A stretch of 64,000 nt of DNA from Paragordius varius (Eukaryota; Animalia; Nematomorpha): contig OZ176054.1 in NCBI GenBank assembly GCA_964247055.1, positions 4,402,001 through 4,466,000 on the forward strand. The letters run 5' to 3'. Positions within the stretch are counted from its first letter, which is position 1; each line of letters opens with the position of its first letter. The notes beneath the pieces were generated by a model that was not told the DNA's origin, searched no databases, and worked only from the letters and a program-made list of their open reading frames with translations. A program made the translations under genes and the position numbers. Below, in pieces: positions 2,748 to 29,254 of the stretch.

Positions 2748-3899
2748 AAGGGAATGAATAAAAAGCAACTCCCATGTCTCAAAAACGCACACCAAATTAT
2801 ATTTACCACCCATATATTATTTATCATTATTAATTTAAAATAACGCTTATGACTTTTTTTTGTGGTTGAAAATAAATTATTATGAAATTCAACATGGTTA
2901 TATATTGCAATTTTTTAACAAAATTTACTAGGTTGGTACCCTTACAAGTTAAACATTTTAAGCGTTACCCGAGTGACATTTAAAAAAAACTTTAGGAACT
3001 AACGCAGTTTTGGTGCCATATTTTTTAAATAAGTTTTCCATATCAAATAATATTTGATAGATGATATTTTTATATATTTATTATTGTTGTGTATCATTTT
3101 TCTCTTTTACGGAATCTAGAGATCGAGTGCATCATTAAGTTTTTAATTGTAATAAAATTTTTGAATAAATATAAATTTTTGCTTTTTTAAAGCAGTTATA
3201 AAAAATCGCACTTTGTCTCTCCCAATCGTAAAGCGTATTTAATGATAAACCGAAAATGGCACTTGTCAGATCTTATTTCACACAATTCGACATATTCTTT
3301 TGATGTCAAAAGTACAAAATTTTTAACCACAATGCAAATCATTTTATAAGTAAATAAACGTCTTTGTGAGTGTCCATGGTTATGCGTTGATAGAGTAAGA
3401 TTCTTGCATCGCATAATCATTTTTTTCACGCCAAAGTATTAAAATCCACCTAATTTTTGAGAGCTTTCCAAGAAAATTTAATCTAATAAATTTTTTTTGC
3501 TGTGAAGTAAATAGTACAAATATAAATATTTTCCTTCATAATATCTATTTTTATCACAAACGAATTGGCTAAAATATGGTATTTTTGGACAATTTAGATC
3601 GAAATAATATCTTTACTGCTTATCCCTAATTAAGATTTTTATAATCATTATACCAAAGTTTTAGGTATATTTATTATAAAATACAAATGTTAATTTATTA
3701 AGCCACAGTATGATAATCGTTATAAATAATTATTTAAGTCTTATTTATTTAATATAAATGTTGTTAAAATAAATTTACTAATTATATATAAGTTCATATC
3801 AATATTGTTAGATTACCTTAGTGTATAAGAAAATAAATAATAAAAAATTTATTAAAGCATGCTGATATTGCACAAAAGCACATATATTTTATAATTTAT

Positions 3900-22940: not shown

Positions 22941-25900
22941 TCAAAGAATTACAAAATAATTGTGTTTATATGTATAAATTACAATGAGTGAAGTACCAAC
23001 CTGATTCACTAATGAAGTATGAATCGATATAAATTCATTATTTTTAATAAAATTGGTAATTTCATTTTGTTCTTTGGTAACCATATCTGGCTTAACATTC
23101 ATTTTCCAACAATTATTGGCAATCGATAAAATCTCTATAGGTTCCATATCAGTTATAAAGACGGTTAAATAAAACGGATCCTTGACCATGTATGGTAAAA
23201 ATGAGTGATTGTGTAAGTTAAATATAATGGAATTTTCCAATTTCTTCTTTAAATGATTTACAATTTTGCAAAAATATTGAAAAGCTACATGTGTTTCGAA
23301 ATCTTTTAATGTTAGTTTCGTTAGATTCGATGAAACGAATAATGGAATTTCTTCCTTTACATACATTTCAGATATGGATTCGGGATCTATGGGTATTACA
23401 TTTTGCGTTTTCACATCAAATTCGTAGAGTGATGTGTAATGTTTAACCGATCTTTCGTAAACAATTTCATTAAGAACATTATTAACATGATTACAATTTA
23501 TAATTAAGATTTTAGCATGTTCCAAGGTTTGACTGATTTCATTGATATCCTAAACAAAATATTGTATTATTTTTAAAAGATTAGAAATGATAAGCGAAAA
23601 ATTTTATTCATATTTTTTGACCACACACTTTATTCAACTAGATAGTTGAACTATTAATAAATTATTTGTAAATATAGTATTATTTGTATGATTAAAAAAA
23701 TGTAATATTACAATTTAAGTATTAATTCAATAATTTATGATTACAAATCATATTTATATTATTTAATTTAGCCAAATTTCAATTATTTTTTATTCAAAAT
23801 TTAAATACTTCTGGCATGTCCATAAATAATACATCTATATCATTTTTGCTCAAAAGTTCCCGTATTTTTGAACAAGTTTTGGCCAAAAGTTTTGATATAT
23901 CCAAATCAACAGCAATTTCCTAAAAATATATGAAAAATTATTTTTGCTACCTCTTCTACCGGCTTATTATTCATTAATACAATCATTTTGTTTTTAGCAT
24001 TTGTAGGATAAAAATTTTCGAGGAGACTTTCCACATTAACTGTAAAACCGATTGCAAAAGATTTGGCGTATTCGGTTGATTTATTAAAGTTGTTTGCATA
24101 ATATTTCAATATATTTGTATAAGTACCTCCTAAAACGATTATTATAACGAAAAACCTTCTATAAATGGTTTAGTTAAACGGTGTTTTGCCAAAGTAAATG
24201 CAAAATCATGAAAATCATAAGTTACATTATGTTGACGCGAATAATTGATTACTGAATACATTGTTTTGTCTAATTTGATATTATAATAGAGATAAGTTTC
24301 TAAAGTATATTTAATGTCATGTAGGGCATCATGTAGGAGATTTATTGGCATTTTCTTTGAGCATATATTTTTCCCTATAAAAAAATGTTAAAACAAAAAT
24401 TCTTACGTAAAAAATGTTCAAAATTAGTAAATGAAGTATCATAAAAATCGAGGAGATCAAGAAAGTTTCCAAATAGTTCATAATCCATTATTTTATGATT
24501 GTTTTTGGTACATATCATTTTGTAATGATTAAAGAACGAGTTTTTATAAGTTTTATCATTTGCATCGAGGCGTATATCCAAATAATAATCAATAATTTCT
24601 TTTGATACAGGTTTAGATATATCATAAAACGTAAAAATGGCATCTGAAATTTTGGTATGTGAAATGTATATAAATACATCTTCCTATATATTATACAAAA
24701 CTATTGTAATACCAAATTAAGCTTGTCCCTAATCGTATTGAGCAAATGTATACATTCAGCTTGATATAGGTATCGATATTTATGAAATGTGATAATATCG
24801 TAATTAATTTGTTCAAATGTGTTCATCGCATTTAAATCTTCACCTACTTCAGATAAAATTATATCGGTATTTAATCGTTTTAATTGTGTCAAATGATTCA
24901 GCACGGCGAAACAAGCTAAAGGAATTCGATAATTATCAACATGATATAACAGTCTCCCACTATGATCCATAATAAGTTTGTTGCTTGGAAATTCGGGACA
25001 ACTAAATATTTATGAAAAAAATGAGGAAATATAATCGATAAATTGAGAATAGATGCATGAGAATAGAACATTAATAAAGGCGATTATTAAGATAAATTCA
25101 AGCAATTCCATCAAATCATAAGACCGCAGATAGTGTTTTAATATTAGTCTTGTGAGTATTTAATTTAGTTTAGGCCATCCAAAAAACTTAACTATTGCGA
25201 TTCGGAGATAAATATTTTTTATATATGGCAAAAATTACATACGGAGTTATTAAATATGGCATTGGGATAGATATGGCCCCGTATTCTGAACAAACGTCGT
25301 AAATTAAATTTGTCAGCGAATGAGTTGCATCATACAAATTGATTTGATGTAAAAGTGACTTAAATGAATCATTCTGTTTGCAAGTAACATCGTTGGCCAT
25401 ATAAATTGGCTTGTTGTCCCCTTTATGGAGAGCTGGAAAACGTATTTTGTTAAACAAAAAGGAAAGAAGTTTAGCAAAGACAATAGAATTAGTAGATTCG
25501 CCGCCGTATATAACTTTCGAAAAAATTGCATCGTAAGCTAAGTCATCCTGTTCTTCTTGTGGTATGATTTGAGAGAGGAGTATTTGTTTAGCATTTGGCC
25601 TTTGTTCAATATCATGTGTTAAAAGCCATTTAACGAGAGTAGTTTGAGTCGGATAAGTAAGACAAAAATTATTGGGCATTTCTACGCCCTTTTTCCGCAA
25701 ATCACATATGATGGAGATTCGTTCCATGGTGGTGTTAAAGGGTGGATTCCATATTTCGTAAATGATTATTCCAAGGGAATAAATGTCGATTTTATAGTTA
25801 TAGATGTTTTTACTTGATATACGTAACTCAGGTGCCATATATAACGTGGTACCAACTAACGAGCCAGAAAAAACATTTTTCCCAAGAAAATCTAAAAAAT

Positions 25901-28156
25901 GCATGCGCAGAGATAGAGATATGAAATGAAAATATTATCAGAATGTATTGATTAAAATATCTTTAAATGATAATCCTTTCATGTTTAAGGCTAAAAATGA
26001 AATACAAATTAATAACAAAAACTGCGAACTAAACTTATTTTGATATTTTTTTCAGTAATCAATGATGTTATGCGTAAAAACTGTTTTAAGTTATTTACAG
26101 TTTTTTTCCAATCGGCTGCAATATAACCGAAAAAATGATCGGTATTGAAAAAAAGCTAAATTATAAGATTATTTATTGAGTTTGTGATTACATACTTGTA
26201 GCGTTCTCCGCAAGACTAATATTTTCAGCGAGACCGAAATCGCCAATTTTTATCGTGTCACGTTTATCTAAAAATATGTTGGCAGGTTTCAAATCCCGAT
26301 GAATTATACCTTGGTCATGTATATAGGACAAACCTAAATTTCCATATAACACCAATAATATACCGTGCAAAATTTCTCGAATATATCGCCAAGCCCTACC
26401 ATGTTGAGCATATAACATATTATTTTCAATGATGTATTTAAGGGTTTTATTTTCACAATATTCCATTTGGATGTATATAAGTTTTATTTTTATGTTTCTT
26501 TTTTCATCATCCGTGGTGTCAACAACACAGTCCCTCGTTCTTTCAAGGCTAGTTACTATGCTTTTATAACTGTCATATTTGTCGGATTGGGCTAAATTAT
26601 AATCATTTTCATCTATTTCACAAGATTCCAGCCATGAATTATAATACCTAAAATAGTAAAATAAATAAAACGCTTATAAAAAAATTTAAATAATGATGTG
26701 TGGGGTAACAAGAAAGGACAGAATTGAGAATAGATTTATTCGTGGGAGCACAGATATTAAACCAATAGTGGAAAGAATGTGAAAAAATAGGCTACGTTGG
26801 TTCGGTCACATTGAAAGGAGAGATCTAATTTTTTTGCAAAAATAATAGATAGTTATATAGTTGAGGGAAAACGAGGACGTGGGCGGCCTAAAACGAAATG
26901 GATAGATACAGTAAAAAGAGAGCTAGCATACGAGCTTAATGCAGAAGTCGCCATACATAGAGTTCTATGGCGAGACAGGTTGTACAACATGAACGCTCTC
27001 AAGAGTGAAAACATGCAATGTAATAATAATTATTACCGTAATTAATATAATATGTTGCTATTTTTCATTTTAAATTATGGGTTTTAGATTCAAATTAATA
27101 TATTTTATTTACCGTTTAAATTTTAATATTTAATATCAATTTTTTAATATAAAATGAAAAATGGAGGGAAAAAATGGAAGAAATCAGAACCATAATTTTT
27201 TAGAATATAATCTTAAAACCGAAACGATTTGTCCAGGTATTTTATAAATACTTTCGCTGGTAAAAACTAAATCTTTACTTTAATTTTTAATATTATACTA
27301 TAATAAATATAATCAAATGGCTAATATATACCGTTTTTATGTAATCACCGAAAAATTTATATTATCGTTTGAGCTTTCAATTATTTTAAAAATTTAACCT
27401 TACAACGTTTTTGGAATCCAGACTACTTAAATATTTTATTTCTTGCAATATCTTCTCTTCATTGTCGGCAAAATACATTGGGACCCTTTTGATAGCATAT
27501 AACATCCCATCTAATTTATTTTGCGTTTTTATGACATCTCCAAAACCACCTCTACCCAAGTGTTCAATAATACAAAAATCTGCGCTTAAACGTGTACTTT
27601 TTTCATCAACCAAAGAAACCAGATCTAAAATATATTAGATAATATCGGGAAAACCTGATATTCGAAGCGTTTTATTTGATTCATTTTTTGTATTTTCAAG
27701 TTTAGGTAAAAAAGTATCTGGGTGTTTATATGTCGGTCGAATAGTATTTCTAAAAATTAAATAATTACATTACAAATCATTGATAAATTTCTGAATTTTT
27801 ATGATAATTTCAGATAACAAATATGTACCAATGTGTTTTGCAGAATATAAGGAGATCAAATTTTTTAGTGATTGTAGTTCACGTTTCCCAATTTTATTTG
27901 AAGAAACAATGCATATTTTTGGATGTCTATTATTAAACAAAAAAATACGTTTTGGGATACCGATCTTGACAAAAGACTTTTATTTTAAGGAAATAAATAT
28001 CGGCTTTAAATAATACAAAAAAAATTATTTGGTTTATAGTCTGTGTTATATATAAAAATATACTGGACAAATTTTATTGTGATCGTCCAGCACAACGCTA
28101 AAAACTTCGGACAAAAATGACAATTCGTAATTTAATTTTGATGGCATGGTCAACAT
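22941..28156 (-). CDS. EIF2AK4: GCN2-like eIF2alpha kinase: RWD + kinase + HisRS-like + C-terminal region; no pseudokinase domain
   Basis: RWD ([10 protein letters not shown]...RYPKTHPKI...[10 protein letters not shown]), kinase ([56 protein letters not shown]), HisRS-like ([38 protein letters not shown]). Start at 28156 or 28147. The exact 3' end is uncertain. Confidence 0.88.
26695..27035 (+). mobile_element. RTE LINE 3' fragment inside a GCN2 intron (antisense to the host gene)
   Basis: [12 protein letters not shown]...[11 protein letters not shown]...[18 protein letters not shown]...W, followed by a (TAA)n tail. Confidence 0.88.
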
Positions 28157-28164
28157 CTGCCCAC

Positions 28165-29254
28165 ATGAATGTTATTGAATTACCTATGGCACTAGTCAAA
28201 GAAATATCAAATAATCAGGATATGAAAAAATGGTCCAATTCCACGGCTTATATGGATTATTTATCTTTTCTTAAAGAGTTAAATATTTCAATTGAAGGAA
28301 AGTTAGATGTAAAATCAGAATCTACGGTAATTAAATATTTTATTTAAGGCTATCCATGGGTTAATATCTTTATTGGATGAAATTAAGGCCTACATAGACC
28401 AAAATCCTCCTATAAAACAAAATCAAAGATTTGGAAACGCTGCTTTTAAAGGATTTTACTCAACCTTGTCTAAAGTTATTAAAATTTAAATTAAAGAATA
28501 TACCTAATCTTTTACAAAAATATTTATCAGTTGAAAATAATATTCCCGAAATTAGCTATTATTTAAACGAAAGCTTTGGAAATGATAGTCGTATTGATTA
28601 CGGAACTGGTTTTTCCATTTAGCTAAATTAAGGTCACGAACTTTCATTCGTAATATTTTTATTATGTTTGTACAAAATTAATTTATTTGGCAAAGAAGAT
28701 TATCCCTCTATAGTTCTTAACGTATTTGAACAGTATTGATTATTATTATGGTAATTATAGATATATGAGATTAGTTAGAAAACTTATAACGGTTTATCAA
28801 ATGGAGCCTGCTGGCAGTCACGGTGTTTGGAGTCTTGATGATTATAGTTTTCTTCCGTTTTTATTGGGAAGTGCACAATTAAAAAGTGGCATTTTATTAT
28901 CTTTATAATATATTTAGAAACAAACATTGAAGTATCATCATTTATTGATCCGCATATGGTAGAAAAATACAAAAATAATTGCTTGTTTTTTAGTGCCGTA
29001 GCCTATATAAACCAAGTTTTTACCGCTTTTATAATATTAAAAAAGGTTAAAACTGGAGCCTTTTCCGAGCACTCCAATGTTTTATGGAATATTAGTGGGG
29101 TACCAACCTGGTCCAAAGTTAATGATGGTTTATTTCGAATGTATAAGGAAGAGGTATAAAATTTTACACGACTTAGGTTTTAAATAAATTCCCAATCATT
29201 CAACATCTCAAATTTGGTGCTCTTTTCAAAATTTCAAACGCTAATACAACATAA
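28165..29254 (+). CDS. PTPA: Serine/threonine phosphatase 2A activator (PTPA / Rrd)
   Basis: [97 protein letters not shown]. Start at 28165 or 28186; stop 29252-29254. Confidence 0.95.

Follow-up and report, generated by a model that had tools for sequence, protein, structure and literature searches.

Can an animal GCN2 do without its pseudokinase, the least understood domain of this protein? The question is raised by a locus of Paragordius varius lying in a 64-kb stretch of DNA (hereafter the window), whose G+C content is 24-32% throughout, and in which an initial annotation read a GCN2 gene that passes from its RWD domain directly into its kinase. Loss of genes and domains would be expected in a parasitic lineage, and loss of the GCN2 pseudokinase would fit that expectation. 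It was also claimed at the outset that the pseudokinase is necessary in canonical GCN2, which agrees with published work, since the domain is required for GCN2 activation in yeast (PMC4014428) and mutation of its dimer interface abolishes GCN2 activity in human cells (PMC12867742). A GCN2 lacking this domain could be a misread gene, a paralogue, a relic or a kinase that is regulated in another way, and these readings are weighed below.

Gene structure and identity

The coding region of P. varius GCN2 runs from 28156 to 22941 on the minus strand and is predicted to consist of 14 exons and 13 GT-AG introns. This model, obtained by reading the strand in three frames and splicing by hand at GT-AG sites, is a single open frame of 1137 codons, free of stops and frameshifts, and the extent of the gene (22941..28156) rests on this uninterrupted frame together with the pattern of polymorphism described further on. 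In order, the introns measure 23, 22, 24, 30, 751, 30, 304, 241, 29, 32, 26, 31 and 259 nt. The first four, which had been proposed at 23, 22, 24 and 30 nt, all begin with GT and end with AG exactly where they had been placed on the minus strand, that is, intron 1 at 28041..28063 (phase 0), intron 2 at 27927..27948 (phase 2), intron 3 at 27750..27773 (phase 2, where the RWD domain ends) and intron 4 at 27625..27654 (phase 1, containing an in-frame stop). Read from the sequence, each of them would cause a frameshift or a stop if kept, the stop being immediate upon retention of intron 3. Intron 6 (26334..26363, minus strand, 30 nt) is in frame, stop-free and inside the kinase (REILHG/LSYIH), and its retention would add 10 residues just upstream of a conserved kinase stretch, a placement that comes from the alignment with the Gordionus protein discussed below.

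The intron calls are backed in three ways, by (i) the positions of introns in Gordionus, (ii) a +T indel at 27932, a polymorphism that lies within intron 2 (22 nt) and is present in three of four DNA runs, and (iii) the confinement of the listed indels to introns (12 of 12 in predicted introns, none in exons, which has a chance of ~4e-4 with about eight independent sites). Contigs from other samples span 27061-27965 and are colinear with the window, which argues against an assembly collapse; they read straight through the introns, and the runs that contain the locus are therefore DNA, while the possible RNA runs under the same species label gave no match to the locus. Introns of only 22-30 nt make it probable that standard gene finders will fragment the gene. 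At its 5' end, P. varius GCN2 is bounded by a divergent gene on the plus strand, made of ORFs at 28165..29159 that we take, from motifs, to be of the PTPA type. As this PTPA-like gene starts on the opposite strand at ~28165, only 8 bp away from the start codon of GCN2, and fills 28165-29159, there is no room for further GCN2 5' exons.

Along the encoded protein, an RWD domain is followed by a linker, one eIF2alpha-kinase domain and a HisRS-like region, and the protein ends in a divergent tail. The RWD domain (27774..28156, minus strand, residues ~1-113, ending in ...QKFINDL) is encoded by exons 1-3 (28064-28156, 27949-28040 and 27774-27926), and its YPxxxP motif (RYPKTHP, 27920-27962, minus strand) is interrupted by intron 2. 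A profile made from the N-termini of 34 canonical GCN2 matches it at residues 49-118 (E=5.4e-8), and BLAST aligns residues 44-110 with the Gordionus RWD at 39% identity (E=1.8e-6); Pfam returned no match on single RWD exons, which encode 31 and 50 aa. The active kinase domain (25531..27595, minus strand, residues ~155-480) is spread over exons 5-8, separated by introns of 751, 30 and 304 nt, and Pfam recognises Pkinase on the corresponding pieces (exons 5, 6-7 and 8) with E=5e-9, 1.7e-20 and 1.9e-12, which together make one kinase domain. The catalytic motifs, which had been described as intact (GxGxxG, Lys, HRD, DFG and APE), were every one located between residues 167 and 382, namely LGRGGFG at 167-173, YAIKR at 187-191, the HRD-type catalytic motif, kept at 326-335, DFG at 346-348 and MAPE at 379-382. 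Compared with solved structures, the C-lobe exon is most similar to GCN2 kinase domains (E=3e-19 to 6e-16), followed by PERK and HRI, other kinases appearing only from 1e-6.

Downstream of the kinase lies the HisRS-like region (23809..25530, minus strand, residues ~481-935). Residues 500-935 alone match the HisRS-like parts of canonical GCN2 with E=1e-8 to 6e-14, and exon 9 aligns to residues 1103-1183 of 8T7T_A, a chain deposited as GCN2 (1650 aa); on single-exon pieces, the Pfam tRNA-synt_His family was not reached. A HisRS-like domain after the kinase is a feature unique to GCN2 (PMC11606652). The last exon (22941..23549, minus strand) encodes 202 aa at the place of the C-terminal domain, which serves dimerisation and ribosome binding in canonical GCN2, but is too divergent to be recognised as such, giving no match by BLAST, failing to score significantly against a C-terminal profile that recovers Gordionus (6e-12) and Apolygus (1.7e-29), and showing weak end-to-end hints only when compared with Gordionus. 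That the gene is a GCN2, as first proposed, is supported by the best matches of the C-lobe exon, the HisRS-like alignment and a placement within the metazoan GCN2 clade. On the combined evidence of its RWD, kinase and HisRS-like domains and of its position in the tree, the gene is identified as an orthologue of GCN2 (EIF2AK4).

Pseudokinase and motif 2

Between the end of the RWD domain (residue 113) and the kinase, the spliced model leaves a linker of ~40 aa (residues 114-153), close to the ~45 aa of the initial annotation. The bulk of this linker is encoded by exon 4 (27655..27749, minus strand, 32 codons), which is most of what stands in the place of the canonical charged region and pseudokinase, and the kinase starts at residue 155 versus about 520-610 in canonical GCN2. 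Four exons and as many introns, the latter 22-30 nt long, completely fill the 760 bp from the RWD domain to the kinase N-lobe, which bears out the view that the introns are too small to hide exons. None of the large introns precedes the kinase; they are located inside it or downstream of it.

The absence of a pseudokinase, which was the central claim, held in every search. Run as had been suggested, although on in-frame exon pieces, Pfam found no domain besides Pkinase, and Pkinase solely in the active-kinase exons. A pseudokinase profile, built from the pre-kinase region of 34 canonical GCN2 sequences and scoring 110-378 bits in canonical GCN2, detected nothing upstream of the P. varius kinase and matched the active kinase by cross-reaction only. 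When residues 1-160 were aligned to the same profile with hhalign the probability was 0.4%, versus 99.6% for an independent canonical GCN2 used as a positive control. A separate pseudokinase, another possibility that had been flagged for checking, was not found within the 64-kb window either, where a six-frame scan of 1917 ORF pieces picked up active-kinase exons only; in a control from which moth sequences had been left out of the profile, the same scan recovered the pseudokinase exons of the Ostrinia locus at 113, 20, 18 and 9.5 bits. BLAST with the linker only gave nothing significant, and the final ~15 residues before the kinase are alone in extending alignments to canonical GCN2. As far as its sequence can tell, P. 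varius GCN2 is without a pseudokinase, be it between the RWD domain and the kinase, in introns or upstream.

The HisRS-like region has lost a shorter element. At the motif-2 site (24848-24865, minus strand), Leu626-Ser627 replace an aromatic-Arg pair, aligning with Phe-Arg of 8T7T_A and with Tyr/Phe-Arg of ten other GCN2, and the Gordionus protein has His-Ala. The ten aligned proteins that keep the pair include GCN2 of plant, amoebozoan and bug origin that are themselves without a pseudokinase. In yeast, the pair is Y1119/R1120, and the protein needs it to bind tRNA and to be activated by tRNA, ribosomes and the P-stalk (PMC11363354). Judging from the alignment, the motif-2 pair is lost in both hairworm-lineage proteins. 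Built-in activating substitutions were sought in the P. varius kinase and none was found, the residues that presumably match yeast R794 and F842 being Lys and Phe.

Gordionus and other GCN2 without a pseudokinase

An exhaustive HMMER search with exon 8 returned 494 proteins at E<=1e-10, none with more than 49% identity, and the closest relative by full-length BLAST is a protein of 1852 aa from Gordionus sp. m RMFG-2023 (XP_065317130), which is a computational annotation. Like P. varius GCN2, it passes from RWD to a single kinase, has no pseudokinase in either protein or locus, and has lost the motif-2 pair. Its RWD domain (residues 6-114, Pfam E=1.4e-12) is followed by a linker of ~220 residues, which is low-complexity, partly charged and rich in Asn, Lys, Ser and Glu, and by a kinase that begins at residue 342. 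Pfam detects no extra kinase-like stretch in this linker and one additional Pkinase stretch in each of the Ptychodera and Andrena GCN2, the pseudokinase profile scores nothing ahead of the Gordionus kinase, and hhalign of the linker against this profile gives 0.2%. The 23 exons of the Gordionus gene could be rebuilt exactly on the genomic locus, and a six-frame scan of this 26-32.5-kb locus, including introns of 3-5 kb, revealed no pseudokinase-like piece. The two proteins nevertheless differ, since in Gordionus the ~220-aa linker is spread over four exons and introns of kilobase size, the kinase insert is much longer and the C-terminal domain, unlike the P. varius tail, is recognisable, and the identity between them is only 33-47%, highest in the kinase N-lobe.

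The two genes also share introns. Introns 2, 5 and 6 of P. varius coincide in alignment column and phase with introns of 50, 428 and 138 nt in Gordionus, and introns 1 and 3 have Gordionus counterparts of 39 and 44 nt in the same phases (0 and 2), offset by 2 codons and 1 codon, respectively. Intron 4 is likely homologous to a phase-1 intron that Gordionus has at a similar distance before GxGxxG. Between them, the four linker exons of Gordionus (residues 118-325) stand against a single exon of 32 codons in P. varius. Within 3-kb flanks the two loci have no neighbours in common, no hairworm orthologue besides Gordionus itself came up in a word search that used its N-terminus, and we found no literature linking Nematomorpha and GCN2.

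A maximum-likelihood analysis under LG+G4 (quick search) of 868 columns from 65 GCN2 proteins, each taken from its kinase to its C-terminus, places P. varius as sister to Gordionus with an SH-aLRT of 96, and the pair is nested in a clade with sponge, acoel, hemichordate, mite and insect GCN2, which carry the pseudokinase. The sister grouping is to be taken with caution and could be inflated, because both are long branches (the end branch of P. varius is 1.52) and a monogenean flatworm sequence joins them; over the columns kept, the identity of P. varius GCN2 to other rows of the tree is at most 33%. Taken together, the shared absence, the shared introns and the sister placement point to a pseudokinase that was lost once, secondarily, within Metazoa and before the split between P. 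varius and Gordionus.

How unusual is this layout? With canonical GCN2 of yeast and human (PDB 1ZYC, 7QQ6, 8T7T and 9F58), P. varius has in common the RWD domain, the kinase with its N-lobe insert and the HisRS-like region; of the charged region, pseudokinase, motif-2 pair and C-terminal domain of canonical GCN2, it is without the first three, and the fourth is unrecognisable. Pseudokinase-less GCN2-like kinases have been published in protists, namely Leishmania LdeK1, Toxoplasma TgIF2K-C/D and Plasmodium PfeIK1, and these still respond to starvation (PMC4889150). In our survey, the GCN2 of Selaginella, Spirogloea, Acytostelium, Clastostelium and Plasmodiophora were also found to be without a pseudokinase and form a separate clade. 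These protist, plant, amoebozoan and plasmodiophorid proteins have the same reduced layout (RWD, kinase and HisRS-like) as P. varius, but these lineages fall outside the sequences of animals and fungi in the tree and may never have had the domain, whereas the loss in P. varius is secondary in animals. There is a further difference in that Selaginella and Acytostelium retain the aromatic-Arg pair of motif 2, which P. varius has lost.

Among animals, the survey brought up two bugs, Apolygus lucorum (KAF6217270) and Cimex lectularius (XP_024083003, isoform X2), in which, as in P. varius, the RWD domain is followed by the kinase without a pseudokinase, and none was found in the 70-kb locus of Apolygus. 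Unlike P. varius, both retain motif 2, and their C-terminal domain is well conserved; a longer isoform may exist in Cimex. They group with arthropod sequences (insects and a mite), so that their loss is independent of that of hairworms. A 1247-aa GCN2 of Choristoneura was considered as another true lineage loss and rejected, since the pseudokinase is present in Ostrinia and Eumeta, two related moths; its absence from the Choristoneura protein is probably an annotation or isoform effect. With the published protist cases and the plants and bugs of our survey, the surprise is limited, and P. varius GCN2, whose reduced layout was already known from protists, is a natural variant.

Constraint and mode of activation

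Polymorphism in DNA tells whether the gene is still under constraint. Its 33 listed exon differences comprise 19 synonymous and 14 nonsynonymous ones, where 20% would be expected to be synonymous (p=2e-6), and pN/pS is about 0.18, these counts being lower bounds, with a further 100 substitutions and 13 indels beyond those listed. The listed differences in the conserved kinase core are synonymous without exception; the three nonsynonymous ones of the kinase all lie in its insert, and the listed nonsynonymous differences cluster in this insert and in the HisRS-like part. P. varius GCN2 is maintained by purifying selection.

The reading that we consider quite likely is that the GCN2 of the hairworm lineage lost the pseudokinase and nearly all of the charged linker secondarily, and has remained a selected and probably active eIF2alpha kinase. 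The loss would be older than the split from Gordionus, after which a linker of the Gordionus type, of ~220 aa, would have shrunk in P. varius to one exon of 32 codons. In view of the purifying selection and of a complete set of catalytic residues, the kinase, if expressed, may well still be working on eIF2alpha, its presumed substrate, which GCN2 phosphorylates at Ser51 upon starvation in dependence on GCN1/GCN20.

Could the locus instead be a diverged GCN2-like paralogue, with a canonical five-domain GCN2 elsewhere in the genome? There is a slim chance of this, as our search covered 64 kb of that genome, the protein is fast-evolving (with the long end branch of 1.52, low identity and an unrecognisable C-terminal tail) and Toxoplasma sets a precedent by having more than one GCN2-like kinase. 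The order of RWD, kinase and HisRS-like domains and the intron positions are however those of an orthologue, and the nearest relative, which is also without a pseudokinase, is the sole Gordionus entry identified among 30 source-named representatives. It would be just as conceivable that a parasite lineage has shed much of the pathway and kept a decaying relic, unexpressed or no longer working as a kinase. Such a fate is suggested by the disappearance of two elements that yeast requires (the pseudokinase and motif 2), by the unrecognisable C-terminal domain and by the concentration of nonsynonymous differences in the kinase insert and the HisRS-like part, but we hold it improbable for a gene with 14 intact exons, all its catalytic motifs, listed indels that fall outside exons, a synonymous excess of 19:14 (p=2e-6) and a conserved kinase core in which the listed differences are all synonymous. 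That a pseudokinase is present but was missed, because exons are hidden, because another isoform exists or because the assembly collapsed between the RWD domain and the kinase, deserves hardly any credence, for while predicted isoforms without the domain do occur elsewhere (as in Choristoneura versus Ostrinia and Eumeta), here the 760 bp are fully accounted for, independent DNA contigs covering 27061-27965 have the same arrangement, no such ORF exists in the window and the large introns do not precede the kinase.

If, as we favour, hairworms have kept a reduced but selected GCN2, how might it be switched on? The RWD domain would recruit it to GCN1 on stalled ribosomes, and since the motif-2 pair is gone, activation would depend less than in yeast and mammals on uncharged tRNA or the P-stalk, or not at all. 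Going by its domains, the regulation of P. varius GCN2 must differ from the scheme of yeast and mammals, presumably leaning on RWD-GCN1 recruitment. A protein without pseudokinase and motif 2 might also be weakly active or repurposed, because yeast needs each of the two (PMC4014428, PMC11363354). The stronger proposal, that of a minimal hairworm GCN2 that lacks both the pseudokinase and the motif-2 sensor and is still active, with activation proceeding via RWD-GCN1 or simple dimerisation, is possible but on the doubtful side. Were it true, nature would have supplied a separation-of-function variant, from which one could read what elements of GCN2 regulation an animal can do without.

In conclusion, an animal GCN2 that is constrained and catalytically complete but has neither the pseudokinase nor the motif-2 pair amounts to an experiment of nature, which could reveal by what means the kinase is freed from the autoinhibition built into it and whether GCN1 and recruitment through the RWD domain suffice.

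Pseudokinase-less GCN2 models in insects

Two cimicomorphan bugs point to a further, apparently independent loss of the pseudokinase among animals: the kinase directly follows the RWD domain in the GCN2 models of Apolygus lucorum and Cimex lectularius (isoform X2), and no pseudokinase-like exon was found in the 70-kb GCN2 locus of the former. The RefSeq GCN2 model of the moth Choristoneura fumiferana (1247 aa) also lacks this domain, which is present in its relatives Ostrinia and Eumeta; a true loss in this species is disfavoured, and the model probably reflects exon-skipping annotation or an isoform.

Compact 5' end and kinase introns

In P. varius, GCN2 lies head-to-head (window 28147-28188) with a putative PTPA-like gene. 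Their start codons are separated by 8 bp, or by 17 bp should translation begin at the second ATG, and the promoters and 5' UTRs of the two genes must therefore overlap. Downstream, the GCN2 micro-introns of 23, 22 and 24 nt have Gordionus counterparts of 39, 50 and 44 nt (5' exons, positions 3001-3774 of the Gordionus genomic locus). Since the latter are short and at matching positions, the P. varius micro-introns look like already-short introns that have shrunk further.

Within the kinase, a 30-nt intron (26334-26363) is stop-free and in frame, and an ORF-based reading through it would silently insert 10 residues into the domain. Only the conservation of the kinase sequence and an intron at the corresponding place in Gordionus reveal it as an intron. 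The 751-nt intron 5 harbours a high-copy repeat (26580-27131), where each of the four DNA runs shows a summed contig depth ~100-400-fold that of the flanking sequence, and variant contigs are numerous. This repeat is probably a transposon fragment.

Divergence of the C-terminal half

The last exon (22941-23549) encodes a 202-aa tail that occupies the place of the GCN2 C-terminal domain and shows no detectable similarity, whereas the same C-terminal profile clearly matches the Gordionus and Apolygus tails. In the HisRS-like region, the aromatic-Arg pair of motif 2 is replaced by Leu-Ser in P. varius (residues 623-628, window 24848-24865) and by His-Ala in Gordionus, whereas Tyr/Phe-Arg is retained in the ten other GCN2 sequences aligned. 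Loss of the motif-2 pair is thus common to the hairworm lineage and accompanies the loss of the pseudokinase.
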